From Octopus bimaculoides (Eukaryota), in assembly GCF_001194135.2 (NCBI RefSeq), contig NC_068981.1, positions 126,989,097 through 127,053,096 of the forward strand: a stretch of DNA of 64,000 bases. The letters run 5' to 3'. Under the pieces are notes generated by a model. The model was not told the DNA's origin and ran no database searches. It saw only the letters and a list, made by a program, of their open reading frames with translations. This document shows positions 708 to 60,038 of the stretch, piece by piece (the stretch's first letter is position 1; every line of letters starts with the position of its first letter). The translations under genes and the position numbers were made by a program.

Positions 708-1836
708 GTAAGTAAATAAATAAAAATTCTTTACGGAAATTGCCGAACAATCAGCTGGCTTGGATCAGTTGACTTCAAGACCAATAATGAAACAATGTCT
801 AAAATTGGAGTAGCTGAGAGGAAGCGTTCCGTAAAAAACAGAGCTGACCTACACAAGTGTGCCCCACCGATTTTGCTTCCTTATAGCTTTCGGGAAAATG
901 AATATTTTTTTAGTGAAATTTTCTACAAAAATCTTTCAGATGGCGGAGATTCCGATTATAGAGAAACATGTTGTGGAAACTACCCACCTCACACACATAA
1001 AATAGTTGTGTGTATACTCATTCGTATACACATATCACAATGTTTTCACAGTATGTGCGCGTCAACCAGTTTTGTTCTTTTTTCACATTACTTCCAATAC
1101 ACTCGTAATCTACTAAACCTTAAAGTTATTTGTAGAAAAATCGGTAGAGATGGGCTATATGTAATCTGAACCCCCCCCCCCNNNNNNNNNNNNNNNNNNN
1201 NNNNNNNNNNNNNNNNNNNNNNNNNNNNNNNNNNNNNNNNNNNNNNNNNNNNNNNNNNNNNNNNNNNNNNNNNNNNNNNNNNNNNNNNNNNNNNNNNNNN
1301 NNNNNNNNNNNNNNNNNNNNNNNNNNNNNNNNNNNNNNNNNNNNNNNNNNNNNNNNNNNNNNNNNNNNNNNNNNNNNNNNNNNNNNNNNNNNNNNNNNNN
1401 NNNNNNNNNNNNNNNNNNNNNNNNNNNNNNNNNNNNNNNNNNNNNNNNNNNNNNNNNNNNNNNNNNNNNNNNNNNNNNNNNNNNNNNNNNNNNNNNNNNN
1501 NNNNNNNNNNNNNNNNNNNNNNNNNNNNNNNNNNNNNNNNNNNNNNNNNNNNNNNNNNNNNNNNNNNNNNNNNNNNNNNNNNNNNNNNNNNNNNNNNNNN
1601 NNNNNNNNNNNNNNNNNNNNNNNNNNNNNNNNNNNNNNNNNNNNNNNNNNNNNNNNNNNNNNNNNNNNNNNNNNNNNNNNNNNNNNNNNNNNNNNNNNNN
1701 NNNNNNNNNNNNNNNNNNNNNNNNNNNNNNNNNNNNNNNNNNNNNNNNNNNNNNNNNNNNNNNNNNNNNNNNNNNNNNNNNNNNNNNNNNNNNNNNNNNN
1801 NNNNNNNNNNNNNNNNNNNNNNNNNNNNNNNNNNNA

Positions 1837-4851: not shown

Positions 4852-7327
4852 TACAAAAATAGGCCCTTCACCCTATCTATTCCTCTTATCACTCCCTCCA
4901 CCTGTCATCTCTATCACTCCAGCTCTCTCGATGCCCACATATTTTTCTTGTTACCTCCAATTATTTCACTTGTTGGCCATTCTTCACCCATTGTTCTCTC
5001 CACTCACATTGCATTGGTTACCCCTGTCTACTGAACCTTCAAATTATCTCATCATGCACTATACTTGCCTCTCCTTCTCCACTCCTGCAGCCTACTCAAC
5101 CAAACATAATTTCTCTCTTGTCTTCTCCCTGTAATCTGTATCATTACTATCAGTGTAACTATCCTACTGCTCTCCCCCACTCTCTTCTACATCTCTATCT
5201 TCCCCAACTGAACCATCATTGGTCATCCCCACTCCAGCCTTTATCCACTATTCCTTACATCCACCCTTCAACCTTACCCTATCTATACAGTTGTTACCTA
5301 CTTTTTATCCTTCGTTCATGTTCCCATGTACTCTTGCAGCCCCCCTCTCCCACATTTCTAGTTCCTCTGTCCCCATCCTTTTCTACTCACATTGTACTTT
5401 GAGGGGCCACCTAGACACTTTATCACCACTATGTATCTCTTTCCAGCTCACCTGATCATTCTCGCCCTCTCTTTTAAATGTAGTTCTTCTACAACATAAA
5501 AACCTGCTTTTCCTCCTTCCCTCATACTTTAACTCTCTCTCGTCTTTGAGCATAAAGCCATCCCCACTCTGGAATTCTTAGTCTTACATGCTGCATGGTG
5601 ATCTCAACTGAACTGGTGGCATGAAAAAAAACTCCCAGTATACCTTGTAAAGTGCATCCAGTTATAGAATCCATGCCAAAACAGACATTGGTGCATGATG
5701 CAGTCCTTGGATCTATTGGATTCTATCAAACCATCCATCCCATGCCAGCAGAGAACATAAATGTTTAATAATGACATGTATAATGTTAAAAGATATTCAC
5801 AATGAAATAGCATAGATAACATTAAAAATTTATAAGTCAAAATTAATATAAGCTTTATATCATATCATTTAAAATATGTATATAAGCAACAGAGGCTGTA
5901 CTGATGCCATAAGGTAATATTTATCCTCACTTAAATGTAGATGTTCTGTTAAAACAAACTATACTGCAGTAGATACCATGAAAGAAACTCTCATATTGGC
6001 TATTGGTGCAAAATACCCTCTTGTTTATAGCACTAGTGGGGAGATAAATCCCTGCCACCTCCAGCGACAAGACCACCAGATCACATAATTTTGACCTTTC
6101 TTGGTCTGGTCAATGATGGACGCTCAACTGCTAGAGATAGCAGCAATTCATCTCCTGGTTAGCGATATATAGAAAAACAGTGCCAGAACAGGTATTGGTG
6201 TCATGATTAGTCAGTGAGCTGGCTAAAATATTTCAATGGTAAAGAGAATTCTGAATCACCCTGCAGATTACACACACACAAGTGTATGCACATGCACTCA
6301 CATACATGTATATAGTTTACAAAGTCATTAGATCATCAGATAGAATGTATATGTTATTTGTTCTGGTTCACAATGCTATGAATTCAAATCCTGCCTTTCA
6401 TCCTTTTAGAGTTAATAAATGCAGTAACACTCTTGTACTGGAGTTGATTCTTTTCTCATGGTTCTCAGCCATACAGGGGGATAGGCTCTACTAAATTCAA
6501 AATGCCCAAAACATACTGATTCACAACAGTACATCTGTGAAAGGAAGAATGAATAAATACATACAACTCAAAAGGAGCAAGGGGAATAAGAGACAGATTG
6601 TTGGTCAGCATAAGAAGTCACAACATCATCATTATCATCACCATTTAGCATCCATTTTCCATGCCAGCATGGGGTGGATGGTTTGACAAGGCGCTGGCGA
6701 ACCAGAAGACTGTACCAAGCTTCACTGTCTGTTTTGGCATAGTTATTATTGGCTGGATGACCTTCCTAACACTAACCACCTTACATAGTGGGACAGTGCT
6801 TGTTACATGGCACCAACACCAGCAAGGTCTGTTTTGGCATGGTTTTTATAGCTGGATGCCCTTCCAAATGCCAACAACTTTACAGTGTGAACTGGATGCT
6901 TTTTATGTGGCACCAGCACTGATGGAGATGCTCGCAAGACAAAGATCATTTGAGTGGGGTGGGTTTATTGGAGGAGGTGGCCTTGTGTTAGGTGATGAGA
7001 GGTTAGTGTGTGACAGAGGACAAACAGGTGCCTTGCTGTTGACAGAAATTCAAAAGGCAGACAAAATATAAACACAAAACGATTTAACATAAAGAGTTGT
7101 GCACAGTGAATTGTACACTGTACAGAAAAGGAAAAGAACTAGACAGACATTTTGGGTGAACCCGTTATCAAAGTAGGGTAAGAAAGAAACAACAGGAAAC
7201 AATACCTGTTTAAAGTATATATGTCCTTTTCTCTCTGCCAGCATGGAAGGCAGATGTTAAGCGATGATGATGATGAAGAAAAATGGAGAGTCAGATCATG
7301 AATTATTGAATTCATGTTCGCTTGTGT

Positions 7328-8829: not shown

Positions 8830-10062
8830 TGAAAAAATACATGAGTTCTTTATTGATATATAATCTGTATCCTAAGCATCTCAGTGATTACTGCTGATGG
8901 ATAAGGGTCTTTCCTTGTCTTCATATCCTTAATTGCTTTATTTATCATACTGTTGTTGACATGAACACCCAGTCCTTCTGTTAGGTTCACTTTCATTCTC
9001 CACATTTAATAGTCTTTCATAATAGCACTTCCACACCTCTTTCTTTTCAGAGTCACTGAGTGCAAGCATACCATTATCTATCTGTACACACTTCTCTCCC
9101 ACAATATCTTGATTCTCTCTGACACACTGTCTAGAGAGCTGGAACACTTCAAGCCTCCGATCTTCACGTTGTGAAACATTGGCAAACCACCTCCTTTCTA
9201 CTTCTGCCCTTGCTAGATAAACCTGTTGCCTAACTTCCCTCTTGTATACCTGATATAGCTCTTTGCCACCTCCATTTTCTCCATTCTTTCCAAGTTTGTC
9301 TCTTCACTTTTATAACCTTATCTATCACACTGTTCTGCCACCAAGTTACTCTCTGTCTGGTAGAGACTTTGCCCCAACCATAGATTTGGTCTGCAGCCTT
9401 CAGTAGGTTGTCTTGTATGAACTTCCAGTTGTCCTCTATATTATATGTCACAACCTCCTCCTCTTTCTCATCAAACACATTAATCAGAATGTCTCTAAAT
9501 CTCTGATGGTTTAATGGATCTTTGAGCTTCCATAATTTCCTTTTCCAAACTGGTTTACATCTCTGTATCCATCTAGCCCTAAATCTGACGTTGCTAACTA
9601 CTAACTTGTGTTGAGCTGTACATTCCTCACTGGGAAAGGACTCTGTATTTATAAACATCTGTCTATTCCTGTTTCTGGTGAGAATACAGTTAATCTGGCT
9701 TGAGTGTCCACTAGACTGATAAGTGATAAGATGGTTGGCTGGTTTCCTGAAATTAGTGTTTCAAACCAAAAAGTTATTTGCATCACAGAACTTCAGGACT
9801 CTTGTCCTCTCCTCATTTCTAGTGCCAAAGCAGAAACTTTCATGTACACCATGAAATTCCATTGATTTGCTGCCTAACATGACCATTGAAGTCACCAGCT
9901 ACAATAATAAGGTAATTGTCCTTCGTTGTTGACGTAGTCTACAGAAGAGACTCACAGAAACAGTCCATCTGTTCATCTGCTATTCCAGCATATGGAGCAT
10001 ATGCAGAGATAAATGTCACTGTTATATTATACAAGACTATTCTTAACTTATTAATCCTATCA
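8830..10062 (-). mobile_element. RTE-clade LINE fragment (APE endonuclease C-terminus and linker), decayed
   Basis: ORF pieces ..HLITYQSSGHSSQINCILTR..E.CTAQHKLVV..WKLKD..NWKFIQDNLLKAADQIYGW..TWW..VRENQDIVGEKC. Confidence 0.8.
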
Positions 10063-10122: not shown

Positions 10123-10680
10123 NNNNNNNNNNNNNNNNNNNNNNNNNNNNNNNNNNNNNNNNNNNNNNNNNNNNNNNNNNNNNNNNNGTACGCTAGGTAA
10201 GTGCTGTAACGGATTACTAGGGCTCCAAGGTTGTATCCAAGACGGTAGTTATAGAGCCATTGCAGACTTCTGATATAGCAGATACATAATTGTTAAAGAG
10301 GACAAACGTTAAACGTTTGTTGTCCTCTTTAACAATTATATATATGTATATCGGCATGGTGCTTTCTGTTTGTGTTTGTCCCCCATCCCTGCTTGACAAC
10401 TAGTGTTGGTTTGTTTATGTCCCCATAACTTAGTAGTTTGGCAAAAGAAACTGATAGAATAAGTACCAGGCTTAAAAAGTAAGTACTGAGATTGATTTGT
10501 TTGACTAAACCCTTCAAAATGGTGCTCTAACATGGTCGCAGTCCAAGGACTGTAAATGTAACATGCATGCATCCATCCATCCATGCATACATACATACAT
10601 ACACACACACATGCACATACATACATACGCACGTATCTGTGTGTGCGACCATAGAGATGTATACATTTTTTTTTTCTCAG

Positions 10681-15053: not shown

Positions 15054-15954
15054 GTATGTAATCACTACAGCAACAACAACAATGGTTCTGAGGATTCCTT
15101 GTTGTTTTGTTTTCTCTTTTTTCAATTTGCCTTTTACTTAGTTTTGCTTATCCTTCTTGATAGAGGGAAACCTTAGTGGCATGAGAATACTTACAGAGAG
15201 TGAGTAAAAGAGTCTACGTAAGATGAAGCTATTAAACTGTAAACAACACACATCTTTACCAAGCAATTTTGTCATTTTCACTGTTGGACTGACCAAAGCC
15301 TTGTGAGTGGATTTGGTAGATAGAAACTGAAAGAAGCCCATCATACATATATGTATATATCTATGTGTGTGTGTCTGTGTTTGTCCCCCACCACCACTTG
15401 ACAACCAGTGTTGATATGTCTAAGTTCTTGTAACTTAGTGGTTAGGCAAAAAGAGACCGATAGAATAAGTAATAAGCTTTTAAAAAATGAGCCCTGGAGT
15501 TGATTTGTTTGACTAAAACCCTTCAAGGTAGTTCCCCAGCATAGCTGCAGTCAAATGACTGAAACAAGTAAAAGATAAAAGATTATTTGTAAGAATCTCA
15601 GAAAAAATGCTTGGCATTATTTGTTCTCGCTTTTATGCTCAAAGTTCAGATCCTGCCAAGGTCTACTTTGCCTTTCATCCTTTTCAGTTCCATAAAATAA
15701 GGTACAAATCAAAGTCACAAACTGAGATCAATGTAATCAACTAAACCCNNNNNNNNNNNNNNNNNNNNNNNNNNNNNNNNNNNNNNNNNNNNNNNNNNNN
15801 NNNNAGTTTATAATTTTTAAAGTCTCTCTATTTATTAATTGCCACAGATTTCAATAAAAGAAATATCAATTGTATAACAAAGAACACAATTATTGTGAGT
15901 TCACAACTAGTGTATTTTTTCATGATTAAAGTTGGGATGTAGAGAGTGATGTTT

Positions 15955-16186: not shown

Positions 16187-17295
16187 CTCATATGTCTTGT
16201 TAGGAAAAAAAAAAAAAGAAGATACTATTTATATATATTGAACATACATTTGTGACCTGTGCCATATGACATTTTTTGCTCATTTATTTAGTCCAAGAAG
16301 AACCAGACTAAAAACTTAGGTCCAATGGACTCTAATGGTTCATGAAAATATTTAATGTCTCACAAAACACCACGCACACTGGTACATCTATTTTTCTGAT
16401 TTTATTAATAGAAGTTGCAAAAGAAACTCACCAAAGAATAAATTCAAAATCTGCCTCAAAGCCAATCAAAAGAGAGTAGAAATTGAACCTTCTGTAGACT
16501 ATGGTTCCTTAAAAAAAACCTTCCATATGACCGTCATAACTTCACTTTCAACAAATCCTATTGTCACAGTGTCTTTTCTATCACTACCACAATCTGTGCA
16601 CCTCCACTATCAAAACATACACTAGCCACTCTACCTGTCATGGGAGTCCCCATACAGTCACTCAACCTATAAGAAATAACAGCCAAATCTCCTTCAGGTC
16701 ATACCCAGCCATCTTTAAAAAGAAAATATTGAATAATGTAGTCTGATATCTAAAAATGGAGAGATGATCAAGGATGAAATACCTTTGATCATAGATTTGT
16801 TTGATCAAAAGGCTGATATGAGACCTAATCCTTCCTAGTCATAACTGCACCCCTCTGAACTTGCTCTCTCCTCTTTAGAACACCATAGCATTTTTGACTC
16901 ATGAAATTCTGTATAGATTCCAATAGTATAAGGAAATATATGAGATATAGAATTACTCTTCACTATGCACAGGAACAGTAGTTTCTATTGTGGAAGTGCT
17001 GTAGTCAGTCAAATTAATCCTATTGTATTACTAATGCTTACTGACTTCCTATCAAAATTTTAACTCATACTGAATTGAAACATAATAAAATATATGCTCT
17101 AATATTCAGTTTAATCATCTTTACTAACCATGTACTGTCTTAAATAAGTGAAGTAATAATTAATGATTTGGTAATGACATGTATGTACTTTTGATTTACA
17201 TTAGAAGCAACCTATTTTTACAGGAGCTAAAACTATACATGCACAATTAGTAAAGGGCTTTATTTAGTATTTATTATTTATTTATCTATTTGCAG

Positions 17296-17538
17296 GTACC
17301 TGAGCTTTCCGGATCTTGGCTTTTGACGTTACTGATGCAGTTCCCTCTAATTATATTTCTGCTGTTCAATGAAAGCCAGACATTTCCTCTTGAAATAGCT
17401 CTTCATATAGTCATGTTTGGGTTTATTCTGATTGAAATATTTTCAGGTTATTTTGCTATTCGTACCATGATCAACTACCAGATGACACAGTTTCACTTGC
17501 GTCAGTTTTCTGACCTAGAGTTTATTACTCAAGACTAA
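17296..17538 (+). CDS. TMEM17: TMEM17 exon 4 (VPELSGSWLLTLLMQFP...FITQD*)
   Basis: ttgcAG acceptor, stop TAA at 17536-17538. Matches human VPELAGFWLLSLLLQLP...FHLQDF. Total CDS 576 nt = 191 aa. Candidate AATAAA at 17859-17864. Confidence 0.95.
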   Translation, partial: VPELSGSWLLTLLMQFPLIIFLLFNESQTFPLEIALHIVMFGFILIEIFSGYFAIRTMINYQMTQFHLRQFSDLEFITQD

Positions 17539-25440: not shown

Positions 25441-26404
25441 CCCCCCCCCCCGTGCATGTATGTATGTATGTGTGTATATATATATGTACACACACATGTA
25501 CATTTGTTTTCTCGTCAGTAAGTTGTAAATGNNNNNNNNNNGTATGTATGTGTATATATATATGTACACACACATGTACATTTGTTTTCTCGTCAGTAAG
25601 TTGTAAATGAGTGACAAGCGGTTTTGTTTACTGTCTTCCGTGAAAACATGCCCAGCCAGGAGGATATACTACCTTACTTGAAAACAAGTGAGGGTTGGTG
25701 ACAGAAAGGGTATCTGGTCATAGAGAATCCACCTCAATGACCTCTGTATGTCCTATGGAAGCATGAATGCTAAAAAAAAATTATTGCAGTTAAATTCTAA
25801 CTAAATAAATCCACCTGAAATGAACTTGGGAAAGGCTTTCATTTCTTTGCTATTAATAAACCCTACATAGGTATTCGGCAATGAGGAAGTATCCATGTAG
25901 TTACTCAAATTACTAGAAATATCTAAATCACCTTCAAACTACTCTTAAAAACTACATCGTAAAAAAGAAAGGCGATACTGGACAATGTAGCCTGCCCTAT
26001 GTACACTATGCCTGGAATGACTGATCATAGGTTTGCTCAATCACGTTGAACTTCGGGTTACAGATAGAAACAAGTCAATAAGTCTAATTAATACTCTACA
26101 CAGTCACTTGGACAGCAGGAAATAACAGCCAAATCTCATTCAAATGTCTTAAAGTAAAAAAAAAAAAGAAAAAGAGTACACACCTGACAATATAGCCCGA
26201 TACAAAAAACAAAAAAACATGGGATAGTCATAAGACCTTTTTGATTATAGATATGATAGAGCTTTGAAGCTAAATGACTTACACAAAGCAAAATGGAGAT
26301 TTAAGAACAATGAACATGTCATAATTATTACTCTTATATTCTCTGATTTAAGATCCAAACTGCAAGAATTAGATTGAGCTACCACATACCTTTATCATAT
26401 GCAA

Positions 26405-31888: not shown

Positions 31889-32329
31889 NNNNNNNNNNNN
31901 NNNNNNNNNNNNNNNNNNNNNNNNNNNNNNNNNNNNNNNNNNNNNNNNNNNNNNNNNNNNNNNNNNNNNNNNNNNNNNNNNNNNNNNNNNNNNNNNNNNN
32001 NNNNNNNNNNNNNNNNNNNNNNNNNNNNNNNNNNNNNNNNNNNNNNNNNNNNNNNNNNNNNNNNNNNNNNNNNNNNNNNNNNNNNNNNNNNNNNNNNNNN
32101 NNNNNNNNNNNNNNNNNNNNNNNNNNNNNNNNNNNNNNNNNNNNNNNNNNNNNNNNNNNNNNNNNNNNNNNNNNNNNNNNNNNNNNNNNNNNNNNNNNNN
32201 NNNNNNNNNNNNNNNNNNNNNNNNNNNNNNNNNNNNNNNNNNNNNNNNNNNNNNNNNNNNNNNNNNNNNNNNNNNNNNNNNNNNNNNNNNNNNNTATATA
32301 TATATATATATAGACACACACACACACAT
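31738..32329. repeat. (TA)n/(CA)n microsatellite spanning a gap, representative of many such tracts
   Basis: Directly visible; similar tracts near 4805, 10085, 18130, 27530, 55730, 59350 and 61510. Confidence 0.9.
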
Positions 32330-32641
32330 GTATGGTCATGTAATTTTAAATTCTAAATTTTAGATTGTTTCAAAATTTGTTTACTTTATTCAAAGATATT
32401 CTAACACTTAAAAGTTTATCTAGTTTCTCAGAATTTCATTTCATACTTGACATACAGTGTTGTTTCCTTTCAATTTCACAGATCAAACAATTTTATTTCA
32501 ATTGGTCAAGACAAAGTAAAAAAATATTAAGAAACAGCTTTCTTCATCAAATTTTTTTGCTGTTGTAATTGCATTGTTTTCTGGGTGGTTGTTTTTTTTT
32601 TTTGTACAGAAAGAAATTTGCATTTAAAAGAGAAATAATAT

Positions 32642-35268
32642 TTAAGATTCAGAAACAGAAGCATTGCTAGATTGTTGCTGTTGTTGATCACTTTGAAAAG
32701 TGTTTTCTGAAAAGGCCACTGACTGATTAGCATCAATTTTAGGTCGGGGTTTGACTGCATGACCTGCAACAACAGTATTACTACTAGTTACAATAGTCAA
32801 AGGTTTCGAAGAAGTAATTGCTTTGCCAGCAGTAGTTACAACAGAAGAATAATTAGAAGCAGAAGCTATGCCTAAACTTTGTCCAAAATTTGAAATACCC
32901 GTGGAACCATCTGCTGAGATACCTGCCAAAGATAGTTTCCGTAATTCAGCTTGCGTCCGCTGCCCTGAATCTATGTTCAGTAAAGCAGCAATAGTGTTTA
33001 GACGTGGACGAGTGGGTGCTGTTGATGTTGATACTGCTGCTGCTGCTGAAATGTGGCTGGCAGCAGTAGAACTGTGGCTTGTTGACTGAGTTAAGGCAGT
33101 ACTGCTAGGAAGAGAAACACTACTCAAAGACAACTTGTGAAGATTAAGTTCTTGGGTGGGAAGTGATGGGAGTATTGATGCAGATGTTGCAGCTTCTGTT
33201 GCTGAAGACACTAGCATGTGCTGCAGTAAAGAGTTATTGGTTGCAACAGTGCTGACAACATCTGACTGCTGAGGTGTACTCATGGCACTACTTGAATTCT
33301 TCACAGAAGAAAATCCTAATAGCTTTTTATGAACTAACTGACTCTCTTTGCTGGTAGACTGAGAGATGGCAGCTCTAACTGCAGACAAAGAGGTGTTAAC
33401 TAAATCTAACGTTTGTTTATCATCTTTCTCATTGAGTTTTCTTTGTGCATCAAATTGCTGCACAGATTGCATCGGTGTCTTTTGGAGGAGAAGTTGTGAA
33501 ATTTGGTTGGTTGCCAGAGAGTTTACACCTGACTGCGGAGTAGTAATTGTATGTGTACTAGATACAATATTAGTTCCTGAATCAGTTGAAACAGTTTGTA
33601 AAGTATTCCAATTAACTCCAGAATTATAAGAAATGGATGAAGGCAATGACATTTCAGTCCCTTTAACAAATGCTACATTTGATTTATCAGTGACACCTGA
33701 TGAAAGATGACTTATTGCATTGGCATCTTTTCGTCCAGCGATGGAAGTTAAAATCATTTGTGCTTTCTCAGCAATAGCAACTGAATAAGGTGGAGGAGGC
33801 TTTCCAATTATTGCTGACTTTGGCATCATATATGATTGTGTAACAGCAGGATCACCTATTGACCCTGCATGGGATTGGGAGAAACCCACTGGAACAGATG
33901 ATTGGACTTTTGGGACACTGGAGTATTGCTGGGCAAGGGATACAATGTCTCCTTCTGAATGTTGAGAAAAACGTTCTTGGTTCTGAAGTGATGACAATTC
34001 TCTGGATTGTATTAAAGATGACAATGTTTGCTTTTCTTGTTGTGTCAGACTACTAAGGTCAAATGATCGCACCATAGACGACAATGTCAAACGTTCCCGA
34101 GTGGATGAAGGCGAAGGTTCATTTGCCTCAGATGCATTTTGATGAGGCACTTGTTTAGAGCTAGTTAAATTATTAACACCCTGAACCATAGAGCTTAGAG
34201 TGAATCGCTCTTGCTGAGCAACAGAAGTTTCACCACTGGTTTGCAATAAGTTCTGAGATAAAGTTCTGCTTTGTGGAGTTAGTAAAGTACCACCTTGACT
34301 GAGTGAAGTTGCTGTGGCGGTGGCACCACTGGAAGATTGACCAGACACAGCGACACTTCTTAACTGGTTTGCATTCAATTCCATAATTGTCTGTGATGAT
34401 AAATCTACTTCGCTACCGCTCGTTAGAGAAGACTTTCGGGTCAAAATTGGTCCTGACGATCCCGTTTGTGGAGTGGTGGCCTGTGTAAAAATGGAAAGTT
34501 TGTAATCTGGTGAGGAAATCTTATTTTGAGAAATTCCAAGAGTTTGTGCAGTGAGTACATCATCCTTGCGCAGAAGTGAAGATTGCTGTGTGCCAGCTGG
34601 AGGAGACTGTGATATAGAGGTGACAGGTGACAGGGCAATATTAGAAGGATTAGTTGAAGGAACATGGCTTCTTGAAGATAACTGATTGTGAAGAGTAGCA
34701 GCGTTAACCTGAGCAATATTTTGAGCTGAGCTGATAGGAATCTGAGTGTTGTGAAACAGAGTTTGGGTGGTGGGAGACTGAGTTGGCTGCGATTGAGATG
34801 TAAGCAATTGGTTAGCCTGTGTGGTCAGAGAAAGGGATTTTAATAACTGGGGGTGATTTGCTTGGTTTGCACGGGCTTTGGCTGCCTGAAAATACTGGCT
34901 AAGGCTGGCTCGGTTCATTTGTGACAAAGCTGCTTGTAAAGCTGAAGGAGCTCCTCTTGGCTTTGCTAACTGAACTGAGGCTGTGGCACTCAGCTGCAAC
35001 TTACTAGTGGGCTCTTGAGATGGTGACTGACTAACAGCTTGCTGGGGGATTGTCTGACCCATTAAGGCCTGTGGAGATGATTGACTAATGACAGCCTGGG
35101 GTGAAGCCTGACTAGATGGAGTCTGTGGAGATGCTTGACCTACTGATGCTTGTGGGGAGGGTTGGCTAAGGACTGACTGTGGGGAGGCCTGGCTTACTTG
35201 TGACTGGGGTGAACTTTGCCCTATTGGGGTTTGGTTTCCTATCTGAGCTTGCTGCTGTTGCTGTTGTT

Positions 35269-35299
<31 letters not shown>

Positions 35300-37803
35300 A
35301 AGAACTAACTGCTGAAGCTGTTGCAACTGCTGCTGCTGCTGCTGTTGCTGTAGCTGCTGTTGCTGCATTTGTTGTTGCTGTAGCTGCTGCTGTTGTAATT
35401 GCTGCAGTTGCTGCTGTTGTAGTGCCAGCTTCTGAGATGCTGCTTGATTTGCAAGCTGCTGGGCAACACGTTGCGGAGAGACAAACTGTCGTGTTTTCTG
35501 TTGTTTGATCAGTTGAGTAAGCTGTTGCGTTATCTGCTGCTGCATCACACTTTGCGACTGCTGCACACTGGACACCGGCTGACCAGCAACTTGAGATGTT
35601 TGTTGCTGCTGCTGCTGTTGTTGTTGTAATTGTTGTTGTAGCTGTTGTTGTTGCAGTTGTTGCTGCAATTGTTGTTGCTGTTGCAGTTGTTGTAGCTGCT
35701 GTAATTGATGTTGCTGCTGTTGTTGCTGCTGCTGTTGTTGCTGCTGCTGTTGTTGCTGTTGCTGCGACATTTGCTGCTGCGCTAAACTGAGTTTCAACTG
35801 TTGCTGACTGACAGTTTGTTGTTGATTTAAAGCTTGTATTAACTGTTGCTGCTGCTGTTGTTGCAATTGCTGCTGCTGTTGTTGCTGTTGTTGTTGTTGC
35901 TGTAATTGCTGCTGTTGCTGCAATTGCTGTTCCAATGAGGTCTGAGCCTGTAACTGGGAAGCCTGTATCACTTGTTGTGATGTCACTTGGGATCTTTGCT
36001 GCTGCTGCTGCTGCTGTTGCATTTGTTGCTGCTGCTGCTGTTGTTGTTGTTGTTGCTGTTGTTGTTGTTGTTGTTGAAGCAACTGGTTTATCTGCTGCTG
36101 AGTAGCCTGAGATAGTTGCTGTGGAGCAGACTGAGCCTTCTGTTGCAGCAGTCCCTGGCTAAGCTGGGCTTGTAGAGAACTAAAACTAGGCTGACTAGCT
36201 GCAGGTGATGCAGCATATGGAGAAGTTGGGGGAGCCCTTGGCTTACCTGAGGCTACATGTTTAGATTTGTCTGAACTTAACTTTGGTTTGCCTGAAGCAG
36301 CCTGGCGGGGTTTAGTAATCAAACCAGTCTGGGGTAGATTCTGTTGGACTACCCGGTGTGCAGAAGCCGTCTGAGCCATTGGATTGGACTGGAGTGTAAT
36401 TGGAGACAGAGCACCAGTTTGTAAAGGTGACGGAGCAGTTGAAGACAGTGGAGACTGGGCAGCAGTAGGGGATGGGACAGGTTGATTCATTGGGGACAGG
36501 GCCGGCTGCTGTAAAGGGGACATTGAGATTTGTGTCATGGGAGAATGTGTGTGCTGACTCATAGGGGACTGAGTGTGTTGACTCATTGGAGAGTGAATAG
36601 TTTGACTGATAGGTGACTGGGCAATAGGAGACATAACAGGATGAGCTATGGGTGATTGGACAGGTTTTGCCATGGGTGAATGAACAGGTTGAGGCATGGG
36701 TGAATGAACAGGCTGTGCCATAGGGGACTGTATGGATTGGATCAAAGGTGAGTGGGCAGGATGCATCATTGGTGATTGGACAGGTTGGTTCAAAGGTGAC
36801 TGAGCAGGAGATTGTACAGGTTGAGCCATAGGAGAATTAGCAAGATAGGATTGAGCTGCTCTGACCACAGAAGGCTGTTGTGCAACCTGGGCAGACTGAT
36901 GAGAGAAGAGGGAAATGCTAGATCGTGAAATACCTGCCACCGAATGAGCTGATTGAGTATTGCTGGCAAAGTGTGAAGCCTGAGTAGATACTGCAAGTGC
37001 AGTGGCAGAAAGAGGAGAGCTGGCAGGTGCACCAATAGGAGAAGTAGGAGCCAAAGTGGTGCTGGTGGTAGTAGTAATGCTGGTGGTAGTAGTAGTAGTA
37101 GAAGTAGTAGTAGTAGTAGTAGTGCTGTTACAGCTAGCATTAGCTGTAGTGGTACCAGATAGTGATTGTGGCACATTTTGTGGAAGAGAAACCCTTGGTT
37201 TATTAAAAAGAGTTATATTAGAGGGGTAAGAGCTTACCATTGGTTCAGTCATGAGAGCTTGGGTTAGAGGTGTGTACTTCGAGGGGCTGACGACAGCAGT
37301 GGTCATGGCTATAGACAAACCAGTGGATGACCCACTTGTCTTGATGGGGCTTTCCACTGATTCTGCTTGAGTCACTTCGGTCGCATTGAACTCAGCATCG
37401 CTTGGAAGTATGCTTTGAGGAACTTTAGTAACAGTGGATGTAGTCTGTGCAGCATTTTTCTCTGCACTCTGACCAGTTTGAGATTTGGGACTGGATAATG
37501 TACGAGGAGACGAGGAGGTGGAACGTAAAGGTGGAGTGTATTTAGAACTCAAGAGACGATTGTGTGAGCTCTTTGCTCCAACAGATCGAGGTGTACCTGG
37601 TGGTGTTATAGAAGGTGCATACTTTTCAGCAGACATTGGCGTTCGAGGTGATGAGAAAAAACGTCCACCTGCTGATCCTCGAGCAGACTTTGGGGTACCT
37701 TTCTTTCGCTGGTCCTTTGTAGCTTCAGTGGCTTTCCTTTGTCGATTAAGATCGTCAAGTACTTTATCCATTCTGGCAACTCTCTTTTTGCCTTTTGATG
37801 AAC
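32642..37803 (-). CDS. PAGR1: PAGR1-like exon 4: end of PAGR1 core (GSSKGKKRVARMDKVLDDLNRQRK) plus ~1700-aa S/T/P/Q-rich tail
   Basis: ttttctcaatccAG acceptor at 37805-37804, phase 1. 5162 nt open to TAA at 32644-32642. Matches human PAGR1 TPGSS..KREARLDKVLSDMKRHKK. AATAAA candidates on - at 32492-32497 and 32385-32390. Confidence 0.88.
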
Positions 37804-38362
37804 CTGGATTGAGAAAAAAAATACCCATGAGAAAATGATAAAGACAAAAAATATAATACAATTTATTTTTCTATTTTATTGTCAAGATATTCCAGAGATG
37901 AATGCTCACCACCTAATAAACTGAAAAAATTCTGAGCAATGTCCACAACCATTTGTTCTATTCTGCATGTATCACTACTAAACACTCCAACCTTACAGAC
38001 TACATATCAAAGTTTTCTTATGGTCACAATACATCCTAAAATCACCTTAGTATGACTAAATACAGAACGAGATCATAGCATAGGTGAGACCATTTCATAT
38101 ATTCAATGTATTTGGTTAATAATCTGCTTTCCAGACCATTATATTTATATTGCTGAGACTGTACGCCTTCACTTAAATTTTTCTTTTTGCTGCTACTTTG
38201 GATCTATAATGCCATGCGAGTGCAGGTGCAATAGTTTATTTGTTGAAGAAACTGTTTTTCTATTTGGATGTCTTTCCTACTACTAACCACAAATATCAGG
38301 TGAGTGTTAAAAGTATATTTTTAGCAGTCAGGGAAACCAGAGCAAGGAATTAAGTATCATAG

Positions 38363-38755
38363 TTGTTGTTGTTGCTGGCACTCCGTCACTTACGACGCCG
38401 AGGGTTCCAGTTGACCCGATCAACGGAACAGCCTGCTCGTGAAATTAACGTGCAAGTGGCTGAGCACTCCACAGACACGTGTACCCTTAACGTAGTTCTC
38501 GGGGATATTCAGTGTGACACAGTGTGACAAGGCTGACCCTTTGAATTACAGGCACAACAGAAACAGGAAGTAAGAGTGAGAGAAAGTTGTGGTGAAAGAG
38601 TACAGCAGGGTTCCCGACCATCCCCTGCCGGAGCCTCGTGGAGCTTTTAGGTGTTTTCGCTCAATAAACACTCACAACGCCTAGTCTGGGAATCGAAACC
38701 GCGATCCTATGCCCGCGAGTCCGCTGCCCTAACCACTGGGCCATTGCACCTCCAC
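38363..38755 (-). mobile_element. tRNA-headed SINE, family C (other copies 51131-51492+, 51690-52046+)
   Basis: GGAGGTGCAATGGCCCAGTGGTTAGGGCAGCGGACTCGC...GGTTTCGATTCCCAGAC head and (CAA)n tail. Confidence 0.85.
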
Positions 38756-39720
38756 GTATCATAGTTAAGAACACAACAAAATGACAATAGAAAGATTTGA
38801 ACCTCTGCCATGTAGTTAGAAGATCAACACGAACTTCTCAGCCACTGTGCTTCATATTCTACAAGAAGAAAAATCTACTTTTCCCTGTAAGGACCAACTA
38901 TACAGTCAAAAGCCTCAATAAAATTAAGAGTTTATTTATCAGAAATATAGCGCAAGCAAACCAAAAACTCTGTTATCAGTGGTGACAGTTTTAATAATAT
39001 GCAGCTAAGGATTACATCAATCTCTAATACTCAAGAAACCTATCATAACATAGCGTTCATTATATGTGACAATAACAGATAATAAGATATCTATCACAGT
39101 TCTATCATAGCTGAGGGTTGGCGACAGGAAGGGCATTCAAGCTGTAAAAAATTTGCCTCAACAAATTTTGTCCACCCCATACAGGTATTGAGAAGTGGAT
39201 GTTGAACAATGATAATGGTGATGATGATAACCAGATTTTATTGATATGCTCATGCAATGGAAAAAGTAAAATAGTCTGCCTTAATCTCCCCAGTGACTTA
39301 GTGGTGACAGAGAGAGAATCCATACAGTCAGTTTGACTGCTAAAGAATGAAACTTACCAAAACAACCAACATAAGTATATATTTTTTTAAACAACCGAAT
39401 TAAAATTGACTCCTAAGCAATGAAGTGATTTCCTGTAACCTTTCCTTTATTTCATATCGAATATCTCACGTAAAATACACCATTTCGAGCATGGTCGTTG
39501 TCAGTACCTCCTGACTGGCCTTTGTGCCGGTGGCACGTAAAAGCACCCACTATACTCTCTGAGTTGTTGGCGTTAGGAAGGGCATCCAGTTGTAGAAACT
39601 CTGCCAAATCAGATTGGAGCCTGGTGTAGCCATCTAGTTCACCAGTCCTCAGTCAAATCATCCAACCCATGCTAGCATGGAAAGCGGACGTTAAACGATG
39701 ATGATGATGATGATCTAGTA

Positions 39721-40038
39721 CAGGCCCGGTCAACTCGAATTACATTGTGGACCACTTTAATCACAGAAAGTTTTTTGAGGGCCGCTTATATACTGACAGA
39801 ATTGAAAGCATTTTGCTTTCTCAAGCTATTATTACAATAATGAATGAATGATCGTTGATTCAACACGAAATATCGTTGCAAAAACAGTATCTTTCTTTTT
39901 TACATTCCATTACAATCTTTAATCTTTGATAAAATTTTTAAAATGCTTGCTTAAATAAACCCATTTCAAGAAGGTATCAAGTGGGCCACAATATAAAAGT
40001 CTGCGGGCTGCATGCAGGCTTCAGGTTGGCCAGCCCTG
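39721..40038. mobile_element. hAT MITE with perfect 8-bp target-site duplication
   Basis: ATCTAGTA at 39713-39720 and 40039-40046; TIRs CAGGCCCGGTCAAC vs CAGGGCTGGCCAAC (11 of 14). Confidence 0.85.
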
Positions 40039-40452
40039 ATCTAGTATGTAGTCTTAACATTTAATTGAACTAATGTATGTAAAGCAGGCATGCATGGATA
40101 ACCAGTTTCAAAAAGTGAACTGCATGAGAAATAACTCATCATCAGACAGACTTCACTACTAAAATAATTCAAGGTAATTATTTTGTTAGACATTGCTTTC
40201 AGAAATTCCCGCTGGCTGCAGGTTGCCTATGTCTGAGGTAAAGTGTCCTGCCTAGAGACATGACAAAAAAATTTATAGCAGATACCAGTACATTATACAT
40301 AATTTCATCTCAACATTTAATGGATATTTCACTCCAATATCAAATAAGATATTAACAATGAGCCTAACAATATGGGAATCTCTCCCACTGCAACAAATAT
40401 TCAACAACTAAACAGATTGGAATGACATATATATATATATATATACACATAC

Positions 40453-40535
40453 CAGGTGTTTTTCTAGGAGTTAGTTTAGTGGTAGATTGCTCTAGGCTGC
40501 CATCATCAAAATCAAATTCTGTAGGTTGTGGCACC
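40453..40535 (-). CDS. PAGR1: PAGR1-like exon 3 (VPQPTEFDFDDGSLEQSTTKLTPRKTPG)
   Basis: tttttttcAG acceptor (phase 2), GTATGT donor (phase 1), 83 nt. PTEFDFDD is the PAGR1 signature. Confidence 0.93.
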
Positions 40536-44936: not shown

Positions 44937-45249
44937 TTTTTTTCCTCTTTGTGTTCTTCTATTTTCTGTTCCACAACTAACTTCTGTTCTATGTCCATAT
45001 CTTCATCCTCTTTCTCCACCTCAGGTGGCCTGCGACCAGGACATTTCCATTTAAGAACTGGTAAGCCACCATTGTCCAGTTTCTCAAACATTTCAGCAAC
45101 TTGATCCGGATAAGGGATCCAGAGGCCCTGGAAGACATTATTTGCATTGTATTTCTCATCGTCACTCACATCAACATCAATAATGTCTTCTTCGTCCTCT
45201 ACACGAGAACTCATTTTCCTCACCATCTGGGAAGATTTGGGGGAATTAG
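44937..45249 (-). CDS. PAGR1: PAGR1-like exon 2 (ANSPKSSQMVRKMSSRVEDEED..LWIPYPDQVAEMFEKL..PGRRPP..EEK)
   Basis: Strong polypyrimidine/AG acceptor at 45251-45250, GTAAGC donor at 44936, 313 nt. W.P.P..I..LYE.L and RRP pattern of PAGR1. Alternative starts at ATG 45226 or 45214. Confidence 0.88.
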
Positions 45250-46447
45250 CTAAAAAGAATAAAAAGAAAAAGAAAATAAACAATAGTAAAATTCTAAGAG
45301 GACATTTCTGTGTATTTAAAACATTCATTTTGTTTCTTTTTACATTTAACAAATTAGTTTTAAGGTTAAGAATGTTGGAATACTATATTCACATTCTTCG
45401 CAGAGCATTGTGATCTGCCTTAAGGCAAAGCATGTAACTCAGCTTGCCTCAATTTGTTACTCTTAATTCACTGACAATAAGTTAGCGAATCATCATCATC
45501 ATCATCGTCATTTAACGTCCGCTTTCCATGCTAGCATGGGTTGGACGATTTAACAGAGGACTGGTGAAACCAGATGGCTACACCAGGCTCCAATCTGATT
45601 TGGCAGAGTTTCTACAGCTGGATGCCCTTCCTAACGCCAACTACTCCGAGAGTGTAGTGGGTGCTTTTACGTGCCACCGGCCCGAAGGCCAGTCAGGCGG
45701 TACTGGCAATGGCCATGCTCAAAATGGTGTATTTTACGTGCCACCTGCACAGGAACCAGTTCGGCAGCACTGGCAATGATCTCACTCGAATGTCTTTACA
45801 CGTGCCAGAAAAAGATATCCACTACAAAAATAATTTCATCAATGATATACAAATAATATTCAAATAAGAATAAAATATTCCATTCCCACTTTAGTATAGA
45901 TCAACAAAGGTAAAATTCAGTGCAAAAAAAAAGAAAAGAAAAAAAATCTTAAATCTTTTTTATCATCTATCTTTTATTTGTTTCAGTTATTGGACAGCAG
46001 CCATACAAGGACACCACCTTTCAAGGCAGTTTTTAGTCAATCAGTCTCTTTTGTGAAACTGATAAATTACAGGGACATAAACAAACCAACACCATTTATC
46101 TATCAGTTGGGGGACAGACAACAAAGACAGACATACATAGGTATGTACATACACACTCACAGATATGTACACATGCACACATATATATATTATATGACAG
46201 GCTTTTTCAGATTCCATCTAGCAAATCCATACGCAAGACCTTGGTTGGCTAGGAGCTACAGTAGAAAAAACTTGCACTGAACCTATGTATGTTGAAAAAT
46301 TCTATAAATTCAAACATTTGTTCAGTTGTTTGGATATTACTTATAGCTTGGATATAGGACTGATAATGGCAGCTAGATTATAAATAAATACAAAAAAGAA
46401 AAGAAAAGAAAAACATACTACAAGACACATTCCTGCTTGTGAGATAT

Positions 46448-51031: not shown

Positions 51032-53169
51032 TAGTTAAAAAAGGAACAGAATTTACAATCTGCTTTGAACATGAATGTGAGAGCTAAGATTTGAGTTTAA
51101 GCATGTTTGTTTGAGAAGGGTTACTGTATACCGGAGGCGCAATGGCCCAGTGGTTAGGGCAGTGGACTCACGGTTTCGATTCCCAGACCGGGCATTGTGA
51201 GTGTTTATTGAGAGAAAACACCTAAAGCTCCACGAGGCTCCGGCAGGGGATGGTGGCGAACCCTGCTGTACTCTTCCACCACAACTTTCTCTCACTCTTA
51301 CTTCCTGTTTCTGTTGTGCCTGTAATTCAAGGCAGTGGACTCGCGGTTTCGATTCCCAGATCGGGCATTGTGAGTGTTTATTGAGAGAAAACACCTAAAG
51401 CTCCACGAGGCTCCAGCAGGGGATGGTGGCGAACCCTGCTGTACAACTTTCTCTCACTCTTACTTCCTGTTTCTGTTGTGCCTGTAATTCAANNNNNNNN
51501 NNNNNNNNNNNNNNNNNNNNNNNNNNNNNNNNNNNNNNNNNNNNNNNNNNNNNNNNNNNNNNNNNNNNNNNNNNNNNNNNNNNNNNNNNNNNNNNNNNNN
51601 NNNNNNNNNNNNNNNNNNNNNNNNNNNNNNNNNNNNNNNNNNNNNNNNNNNNNNNNNNNNNNNNNNNNNNNNNNNNNNNNNNNNNNNNNCGGAGGCGCAA
51701 TGGCCCAGTGGTTAGGGCAGTGGACTCACGGTTTCGATTCCCAGACCGGGCATTGTGAGTGTTTATTGAGAGAAAACACCTAAAGCTCCACGAGGCTCCA
51801 GCAGGGGATGGTGGCGAACCCTGCTGTACAACTTTCTCTCACTCTTACTTCCTGTTTCTGTTGTGCCTGTAATTCAAAGGATCAGTCTTGTCACACTGTG
51901 TCACGCTGAATATCTCCGAGAACTACGTTAAGGGTACACATGTCTGTGGAGTGCTCAGCCACTTGCATGTTAATTTCACAAGCAGGCTGTTCCGTTGATC
52001 GGATCGACTGGAACCCACAACATCGTAAGCGACGGAGTGCCAACAAACACTGTATACCATTCAGTACAACCAATAAAATTTATAGAGTGAAGACACACAA
52101 GGGTACATCCATACAATTGCTCAATCTGCTAAAAGTAACAGCCAAACTACCTTCAAATCACAATATACCAACTTACAAAAGGAAGAACAGATTAGACAAT
52201 GTAATCCCTGATATACAAAAAGTTGCCATGATATATGGAAGAAATGTTTTTCAACATGAGTCTGCTTGGTCAGGTTTTGACCAGAAGGATCAGCAGTAAT
52301 CTTTAGGTTTTAAAAGCACCATTCAAGCGTTGGACCTCATGGAGGCAGTGACAGGTGATCAAGACCTTTAGCAATATATCAAGCTTATGTAGATCTGTCA
52401 AGCCAAGTGATATCGTAGTCATGGTCGATGCTGGTGTCATGCCAGTGGTACGTAAAAAGCACCTACAACACTCTTGGAGTGGTTGGCATTAGGAAAGGCA
52501 TCTGGCCGTAGAAACCTTGCCAATTCAGATTGGAGCCTGTGCAGCTCCCTGGCTTACCAGTTTCCAGTCAAACTGTCCAAACTATGCTGGCATGGAAAAC
52601 AGATATTAAATGATGATGATGATATATCTAGAAGTGGGTGGAGCTGAATTATCAATTTAAGACAGAAAAAGATTTATGAAAACACTTCAAGAATACCTTT
52701 TTTCTTTTATTATTAAATGTACAAGACCTTTGTGAAATGTGGCTACAGAAAAGACAAAGACTTTTTCACTTATAGTGATAGCAACTGAACTCTCAATGAA
52801 TATATACTTGCTAAAATCCCCTATATTGTGTCCAAGAAGAATTTTCTAGTAGTGGTGACCACAATAGATACAACCTAATCTTTCGTTCAATTTTAGGTTC
52901 ATAAATTTAAAGCACTGCTCAATCAAAATCTTATTTTCCCCTTGTAAACCTTATATCAGATACAAAGGGATCTTCCAGTTTAAAGGGATCTAGAATGAAG
53001 CTACTCTTCACAAGTACACATATTGTTGATAAGGGTAGAGGAAAACCAAAGTGGTAGTTTATACAAATGCCAAATCAGAGATAAGATGCTATATGATCGA
53101 AGCACTACAAACAATATCTTACTGAACCAGTGGGCCTAATTTATCATCATTTAGCATGTTTTTCGATGC

Positions 53170-55774: not shown

Positions 55775-57184
55775 NNNNNNNNNNTGAGTTTCTGTCTACC
55801 AAATCCACTCACAAGGCTTTGGTCAGCCTGAGACTATAGTAGAAGACACTTGCCCAAAGTTCCATGCAGTGGGACTGAACGCAGAATCATGTGGTTGAGA
55901 AGCCAACTTCTTACCATGCAGCTACACCTAGTGCATGGTAGTGAAACATGGATATTGGATGCATAATGCTGATGTACATGAACAAACAGCACAAATAAGT
56001 TGATAATAAAAACTGAGTATATGAGAAATCAGCTATAGTGTGCAAAAGAAAAGACAGAGCTAGTATGGAGACATGATGCATATGGTTAATGACAGTTGGT
56101 AAAAAAGTGCCAAGTGGTCCCAATGGAAGGAATATGTGATAAAGAAACATTGAGAAAGATGTAGGAAGTAGTGAAGTTGATGTCAGAATGTTGAAGGTTG
56201 CAAAGGTGACAAGGTACCATAAATAGCAAGAAGCTGCACTGGAGAAGACCAAATCCAAGCATGGCAAAATAGATGTAAAATGATAATGACTATCAGTTTT
56301 ATATTTATTTTTCTAATGCCTGCATGGATTGGCTAGGTTTAGGAGAAAGCATTCAACCACATATCTTAATCTTCCATGATGACTGATATGCATAATGAGA
56401 AATAAGTTCAGTAAATATCAAACTTCAAAAGTCACTTCACTAATCTCATTTAAAATAAACATTAATGAACCAACATTTGAGCCTTTATGTGGTCATTTAA
56501 ATGGCTAGACATAGCAGCAAAATCTTCAAGTTACACTATATCAGCTTGAAAAAGAACCACATTGGATAATGGTGTTGTAGATTATGCAATGCTCAAAAGA
56601 ACAGACAAAATGGTAATACCTGAAACGTTTTGGATTATGAGTCTGTACAGTGACAGTTGACCTGAGATTAAACAACAAACGTCTACTTCACAGACAACAT
56701 ATAAGCAATCAGGTATTTATGTTGTTTTTGTAACTTCCTGTTTTCAATTTAAGTAAAAAAAACGAAACTTGATAGAATGTCATTTATAATACAGGAAGTG
56801 GCAGAAAAAAATTCCCATATTTTATTTGGTCATCGGTGTGTGGCACTAATGCTGCTCCAGCATGACCGCAGCCACTTGGCTGAAACCCATAAATAAATAA
56901 ATAAATATAGCTAATGTTTTTATCACTTTCCTTTTTTATTCCCCCACCCCACCAGCTATCCTCATGGTTTGGATTGATGCACACCATGCATTAACTGTTG
57001 AAATGTTTATCAAGAACAGGGAATCTGTAATTGCAACACAGATTTTTTCATATTCATTTTGGGTTAAATCAAAATGATGTTGCTCCAGACTGAAAATCTA
57101 TATTGCTATGGACTGAAAAATTCAGAGTTGCAGATTTAGGGCTAAAAAAAAAAAAAAAATTCTGGTAGACCTTAAGAGTGTTCA

Positions 57185-59968: not shown

Positions 59969-60038
59969 CTATGGCATCTGTCAATGAATAGGAGAAATAC
60001 TTCTTCACTTTACATGAAAACATGCTACTTCCCGCCAT
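59969..60038 (-). CDS. PAGR1: Predicted PAGR1-like exon 1 (MAGSSMFSCKVKKYFSYSLTDAI)
   Basis: ATGGCG at 60038, consensus AG|GTGAGT donor at 59968. 70 nt (phase 1) joins exon 2 in frame; total CDS 5628 nt = 1875 aa. May instead be a partly untranslated leader. Confidence 0.6.

Follow-up and report, generated by a model that had tools for sequence, protein, structure and literature searches.

A probable in-frame exitron in the long, probably disordered tail of PAGR1/PA1 from Octopus bimaculoides

Human PAGR1/PA1 is a protein of 254 amino acids (aa), and PAGR1 is usually seen as a small stabiliser of PTIP. Mammalian PA1 is a tightly bound, stabilising partner of PTIP; it occurs in the KMT2C/D (MLL3/4) complexes and, separately from these, in a PTIP-PA1 pair (PMC6954584). 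The second described system relevant here is the exitron in the definition of Marquez et al. (2015; PMC4484396). The analysis presented below concerns a stretch of 64,000 nucleotides (nt) from Octopus bimaculoides (the window; all coordinates are window positions), whose minus strand carries a PAGR1/PA1 gene with a core attached to a tail seven times the size of the core itself. We consider it likely that the middle of the giant and probably disordered tail of this octopus PAGR1 is an exitron, so that the protein would have 1,875 aa when the exitron is retained and 956 aa when it is spliced out, and the core would tether either form to PTIP.

The octopus protein resembles the known PAGR1/PA1 proteins in its full-length match to the Pfam family PF15364 and in an N-terminal region that is acidic, as is usual for this family, while the sequence added to it differs in being neutral to slightly basic and rich in Q, S and T rather than in glutamate. 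The tail is similar to the glutamine-rich regions of coactivators, such as KMT2D, the Mediator subunits and NCOA6, by composition alone and without homology, and the octopus protein is likely to be part of the same KMT2C/D complex by analogy with the membership of PA1. With the described exitrons the internal piece of the octopus tail shares canonical splice sites, the absence of stop codons, a length divisible by three, a G+C content above that of introns and synonymous-biased substitution; it likewise codes for probably disordered sequence with many short motifs. The difference lies in the great length of the octopus piece (2.2-2.8 kb), and this conserved putative exitron is the most unusual element of the locus.

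The PAGR1 core and the open terminal exon

The gene consists of four exons with GT donors and AG acceptors, which join in frame exactly as the first-pass annotation of this DNA had calculated (70 + 313 + 83 + 5,162 = 5,628 nt), giving 1,875 codons and a stop with zero internal stops in the joined frame. Exon 1 (60038..59969 (-), 70 nt) starts with ATG, encodes MAGSSMFSCKVKKYFSYSLTDAI plus 1 nt and ends at the donor GTGAGT; its residues are the same (23 of 23) as those of the first exon of the longer O. vulgaris model of 954 aa. Exon 2 (45249..44937 (-), 313 nt) contains an alternative start, MVRKMS, together with most of the PAXIP1_C domain, to which exon 3 (40535..40453 (-), 83 nt) contributes the part PQPTEFDFDD...TPRKTPG. 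The terminal exon 4 (37803..32642 (-), 5,162 nt including the TAA) encodes the last 26 codons of the core and the entire extension, its start being fixed at 37803 by the acceptor TTTTTTTTCTCAATCCAG/GTTCAT (the slash marks the splice junction here and below). The longest open frame of the region runs from 37861 to 32642 (-) and has 1,739 codons, a length for which a chance origin is by far implausible in a genome of about 35% G+C.

The identity of the core, which the first-pass annotation had taken for a PAGR1 homologue, was borne out by the Pfam domain PAXIP1_C (PF15364), matched over profile positions 4-130 of 132 with a score of 89.3 bits (E=3e-25; the cut-off is 27). The match covers residues 49-182 of the full protein and terminates 26 codons into exon 4 (37803..37724 (-)), next to the point, about 25 aa into this exon, where the core had been said to end. 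A homologue search produced 27 matches, all with PF15364 and several of them named PAGR1 or PA1, and the nearest relatives were annotated PAGR1/PA1 proteins from bivalves, annelids and echinoderms; the octopus proteins identical to the query were missing from its output, which was put down to a peculiarity of the search tool. The PDB sequence search with the core found no relative. Judged from these sequence relationships, the locus is the O. bimaculoides orthologue of PAGR1/PA1.

Beyond the core the same frame continues, as also annotated at first pass, through microsatellite-like tracts into a long Q/S/P-rich tail of about 1,690 residues (20% Q, 17% S, 9% A, 9% T, 8% L and 7% P). The Pfam search with the whole exon-4 product recognised the end of PAXIP1_C only, and the tail has no known domain. 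The proposal of a single 5.16-kb exon stood in one respect and failed in another: the frame is open throughout the 5,162 nt, while the existing gene models cut an in-frame intron, 37237..34481 (-), out of it.

Two translation starts are possible in this gene, the ATG of exon 1, which adds 31 residues (MAGSSMF...), and the conserved MVRKMS of exon 2 (45158..45226 (-)). The O. vulgaris annotation includes both start isoforms, with 954 aa from exon 1 and 923 aa from the Met in exon 2.

The internal piece of exon 4

The UniProt entry A0A0L8FPE3 (O. bimaculoides, uncharacterised, 956 aa) is identical with the window product in its first 344 and last 612 residues and lacks residues 345-1263. A search with the non-repetitive tail found the two O. 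vulgaris models, CAI9715147 (954 aa) and CAI9715148 (923 aa), both with PF15364 and both in the same 90% cluster as A0A0L8FPE3. All three models excise the same in-frame piece, which in O. bimaculoides has 919 codons or 2,757 nt and is bordered by the donor CCAATG/GTAAGC and the acceptor CTTTCCATTTTTACACAG/GC, both near consensus. Splicing within exon 4, which had been named at first pass as an outcome contrary to a long tail, is thus present in the models to the extent of these 919 codons, yet a tail of about 770 aa stays. The core and the distal tail are part of both predicted products, and the database entries of 956, 954 and 923 aa probably describe just one of two isoforms.

The evolution of the piece was followed by comparison with the O. 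vulgaris genome (OX597814.1), a species separated from O. bimaculoides about 34 million years ago (PMC10700109). The O. vulgaris terminal exon is also fully open (5,126 nt) and has the same two splice sites with an internal piece of 2,727 nt between them. The ratio of nonsynonymous to synonymous substitution rates (dN/dS) between the two octopuses was 0.16 for exon 4 as a whole, 0.11 for the putative exitron and 0.32 for the distal tail, and such values across the parts of the exon (0.11-0.32) indicate real coding sequence. The substitutions in the internal piece were distributed over codon positions 1, 2 and 3 as 16, 13 and 73. All gaps at the protein level in the exon 4 alignment (10 of 10) preserve the frame, and mismatches amount to 2.4% in exon 4 vs 4-5% in intron 3, where 16 gap openings are present over about 2 kb.

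These data bear on the possibility that the 2,757 nt form an ordinary intron which is spliced constitutively, that the protein has 956 aa and that the open frame is a by-product of the CAG/CAA-rich repeats. Such an explanation would agree with the databases holding the spliced form only, and with roughly a third of the piece being a glutamine repeat, poor in stop codons in this frame. It does not account for some 600 codons outside the glutamine repeat which are open as well: the two parts of the piece flanking the glutamine block have dN/dS values of 0.28 and 0.11, and without this block the substitutions remain biased to the third codon position (8/5/21, p=0.0017). Furthermore, the indels of the piece are all in frame, whereas the adjoining intron is full of indels; the G+C content of the piece is 0.46 vs 0.32-0.39 in the surrounding introns; and the frame, together with blocks of residues, persists in a far more divergent locus described below. 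A constitutive intron is therefore very unlikely. Coding-type substitution, in-frame gaps and the open frame together indicate that the piece must be translated often enough for purifying selection to act on it. By the pattern of its substitutions, the internal piece evolves as coding sequence.

The divergent locus (L002) was found in a HMMER search of 1.84 billion representative proteins, which used the O. vulgaris core and tail without the internal piece as the query and returned 107 matches. It is located on a 142-kb contig of the ENA assembly ERZ21867824, on which an open reading frame (ORF) of 1,535 aa showed similarity to the tail at E=2e-114. The L002 exons of 313 nt, 83 nt and an open terminal 4,640 nt encode 1,670 aa from MVRKMS, and its tail, the distal part included, is about 48% identical to the octopus tail. 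Within it lies an in-frame internal piece of 2,208 nt with the same donor and acceptor letters as in octopus, in which the blocks LFNKPR, SP octads, LQAALSQ, HPQL and DYKLSIFTQ persist. A TMEM17-like neighbour is placed tail-to-tail with PAGR1 both in the window and in L002, indicating that the gene order is conserved. From this synteny and from the sequence similarity, L002 appears to belong to a distant cephalopod, and the shared exon structure, splice-site letters and tail identity imply that the extension is old. Word-indexed searches with the octopus tail and the L002 tail found the O. vulgaris models only and no annotated orthologue from squid, cuttlefish or nautilus.

The TMEM17-like exon of the window is located at 17275..17529 (+); it matches Pfam Transmemb_17 with 29.6 bits vs a cut-off of 26 and is 66% identical to the ORF downstream of the L002 PAGR1.

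In all three genomes the internal piece is open and a multiple of three (2,757, 2,727 and 2,208 nt), and its splice letters, ATG/GTAAGC and CTTTCCATTTTTACACAG/G, are the same. Where octopus and L002 have the same residue, 43% of all degenerate codons match. For the residues spanning the donor (P, V, S) and for those spanning the pyrimidine tract and AG (L, S, I, F, T, Q) the matching degenerate codons are 9 of 9, and the conserved residues immediately flanking these signals use different codons in 9 of 9 cases (Fisher p=4e-5, for windows picked after looking). This supports the presence of old, real splice signals overlaid on coding sequence, and points to the frame and the splice signals having been conserved together across distant cephalopods.

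The same observations have to be set against the explanation that the internal intron of the models is an artefact of annotation, with exon 4 never spliced and the 1,875-aa protein as the sole product. Low-complexity sequence tends to be passed over by gene predictors, and ab initio programs can excise it at good splice sites. Moreover, a good pair of sites is not unique in the exon, which has other GTAAG sites (CAG/GTAAGC at 36246) and 10 acceptor-like sites, and, as the O. vulgaris models drew on O. bimaculoides proteins, two of the three observations of the excision may be one. An artefact would, on the other side, leave unexplained the near-consensus donor and acceptor that lie in frame in three genomes despite the differing lengths of the piece, as well as the synonymous positions frozen over both signals in a relative with only about 48% tail identity; it seems unlikely on the whole. 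The splice letters, the frame and the coding evolution taken together give the piece the sequence properties of an exitron: it lies within a coding exon, keeps the frame when unspliced, has canonical splice signals and evolves as an exon does. The segment 37237..34481 (-) is thus probably an exitron, that is, an alternative intron within exon 4, in frame and conserved.

Several points weigh against this conclusion. The argument from synonymous sites stands on 9 codons. The spliced form is known from gene models alone, and the retained form is deduced from selection only: an exact look-up of the exitron-retaining products (1,875, 1,844 and 1,709 aa, and 1,697 aa for O. vulgaris) gave no match among about 15 billion proteins. 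Finally, the O. vulgaris annotation pipeline aligned the UniProt proteome of O. bimaculoides as evidence (PMC10700109), so that the models supporting the spliced form are not independent.

Origin of the extension

Low-complexity tails commonly grow in a lineage-specific way, and the first-pass annotation had proposed a lineage-specific fusion of PA1 to a disordered region. Its first element held: when the extension was compared by BLASTP with 124 family members from outside the cephalopods, no similarity below E=1 was obtained, the best value being E=1.4. None of these 124 members is longer than 656 aa, and their median length is 207 aa. The octopus protein, both with 1,875 aa and with 956 aa in the spliced form, is outside the usual family size of 130-350 aa, a size which is typical of the family and not defining for it. 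The cephalopod terminal exon has reached about 5 kb by growth directly behind the core. A literature search found no paper linking PAGR1 to cephalopods.

Long tails are also present in other molluscs, namely in Aplysia (XP_005108215, 576 aa), Elysia (578 aa), Plakobranchus (639 aa), Physella (481-498 aa), Bradybaena (443 aa) and Potamilus (635 aa). Similarly to the octopus protein, these have an N-terminal core followed by a low-complexity tail, of 300-450 aa and rich in S, T, P and A. In contrast to the octopus, the gastropod and Potamilus tails have no glutamine block, SP octads or conserved islands and are at most a third of the octopus length. The S/T-rich tails of the gastropods and of the freshwater mussel Potamilus imply that a variable disordered tail as such is not unique to cephalopods.

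The fusion itself was not supported. No independent homologue of the added part was found: the HMMER scan of the 1.84 billion representatives gave no tail relatives outside the PAGR1 loci of octopus and L002, while global searching with the exitron part itself covered it only partly. With no donor gene visible, elongation in place by repeat growth is preferred over fusion, and lengthening of an already variable terminal-exon tail would be the more economical explanation of the sequence data. A tail captured from another gene, or a separate gene starting at an internal Met (MDKVLDD...), is extremely unlikely. The latter may be suggested by the ORF caller, which on the ENA contig gave the tail alone, with 1,535 aa from that Met. 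Both variants conflict with the gene structure, since the last 26 PAXIP1_C residues share exon 4 and its frame and run directly into the tail behind a conserved exon-4 acceptor, as well as with the absence of tail-like proteins beyond the PAGR1 loci in the scan just described.

Anatomy of the tail and its possible function

The extension is made of three parts, a proximal S/T/P-rich region, the 919-residue middle and a distal tail of 612 residues, and the tandem repeats found by Tandem Repeats Finder (TRF) in exon 4 are CAG/CAA, ACN and arrays with a 24-nt period. The proximal region (residues 183-344, 37723..37238 (-)) is present in every isoform and is nearly invariant between O. bimaculoides and O. 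vulgaris.

The putative exitron (residues 345-1263, 37237..34481 (-)) is the 2,757-nt portion removed in the three gene models. It includes a threonine run (residues 383-405, 37123..37055 (-)), followed by about 17 tandem octads SP[MIL]xQxx[QH] (residues 479-630, 36835..36380 (-)), which correspond to the TRF period-24 arrays; the SP[MLI] motifs have an 8-residue spacing in octopus and L002 alike. Basic KPR/GKP motifs are also present. Further downstream is a glutamine-rich block of 320 residues (691-1010, 36199..35240 (-)) with 30% glutamine and Q runs of up to 18, the glutamine runs of the corresponding L002 block being shorter than in octopus. The exitron closes with a unique part, whose final residues DYKLSIFTQ overlap the splice acceptor. 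A second near-consensus donor, TCAG/GTAAGCC at 36246 (-), lies inside the exitron within a conserved SGKP motif. This donor was rejected as a partner of the acceptor at 34481, the resulting 1,766-nt piece being one that would shift the frame.

The distal tail (residues 1264-1875, 34480..32645 (-)) is S/T-rich, belongs to all isoforms and ends with a conserved C-terminal VSES. Four of its short islands are RERLTLSSM...QQEKQTLSSL... (34099..33980 (-); conserved, predicted helical, predicted local distance difference test (pLDDT) 60-78), the invariant IGKPPPPYSVAIAEKA with a PPxY motif (33808..33761 (-)), EKDDKQTLDLVNTSLSAVRAAIS (33430..33362 (-); conserved, predicted helical, pLDDT about 71) and the conserved TRPRLNTIAALLNIDS, which contains IxxLL (33013..32966 (-)). 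The list of distal islands conserved between octopus and L002 comprises QERFTL, RERLTLxSM...QQEKQTLSxL, VGFSQSH, IGKPPPPYSVAIAEKA, EKDDKQTLDLVNTSLSAVR, NNSLLQHML, TRPRLxxIAALLNIDS and VSES. The composition of the tail is of low hydrophobicity. AlphaFold2 modelling of the distal tail gave a mean pLDDT of 34.6, with 549 of the 612 residues below 50 and only two helical islands above 70, both of which are conserved blocks; it weighs against a firm assignment of disorder that the underlying 3-sequence alignment is shallow and that low pLDDT is weak evidence of it. The model fits a disordered chain with short binding motifs.

The DNA under IGKPPPPYSVAIAEKA (33762..33818 (-); 13432..13488 in L002) is 88% identical between octopus and L002 over 57 nt and includes 9 consecutive identical codons, the longest such run of the exon, other stretches being 69-78% identical. 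Its synonymous conservation, exceeding the need of the protein, makes an RNA-level signal possible, for instance a splicing enhancer or a structure related to editing.

With regard to function, the first-pass annotation had suggested a coactivator or condensate role for the tail, and such a role may be conceived as follows. The octopus core would tether the protein to PTIP, as in mammals; the distal islands might serve as docking motifs for other nuclear proteins, the Ser-Pro octads as substrates of proline-directed kinases, and the glutamine block could add multivalent self-association or activation. Exitron splicing would then switch the Ser-Pro and glutamine modules on and off and might thereby alter the complex in its valency or its strength of activation. 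In its strongest form, an ancient and regulated exitron common to octopuses and a distant cephalopod would switch a Q/Ser-Pro module, about 900 residues long, within one subunit of the PTIP-KMT2C/D machinery, possibly in a tissue-specific (e.g., neural) manner, which we regard as a tentative possibility. If true, cephalopods would have enhancer machinery of the PTIP-KMT2C/D type with splice-controlled valency or activation strength. The purifying selection on the tail in distant cephalopods suggests that the subunit has taken on roles in scaffolding or docking in this clade. As a candidate, the locus offers a clean case of a very large conserved exitron removing a polyglutamine and phospho-repeat module, and such a case bears on the tuning of disordered regions by splicing.

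Other features of the window

Assembly gaps (runs of N) are located at 1182..1835, 10123..10187, 15749..15804, 25532..25541, 31889..32294, 51493..51689 and 55775..55784. The gap 31889..32294 begins about 350 nt past the PAGR1 stop codon, between (TG)n and (TA)n microsatellites, and, being so close behind the stop, it may leave the 3' untranslated region incomplete. Ahead of this gap, polyadenylation-type signals are present at 32497 and 32390, as found by a scan which took either AATAAA or ATTAAA.

A 142-codon ORF at 9230..9658 (-) resembles by eye a fragment of a retroelement protein; a Pfam search gave no match at E<=0.01. A short interspersed repeat is present in several copies in introns and flanking DNA, namely at 39452..39633 (-), 45528..45779 (+), 6661..7071 (+) and in intron 3 (40452..37804), at bases 741-986 from its 5' end. 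The chance ORFs of this repeat share ...ATPGSNLIWQSFY(N/S)WMPFLTPTT..., and its intron-3 copy matches many places in the O. vulgaris locus with 75-89% identity.

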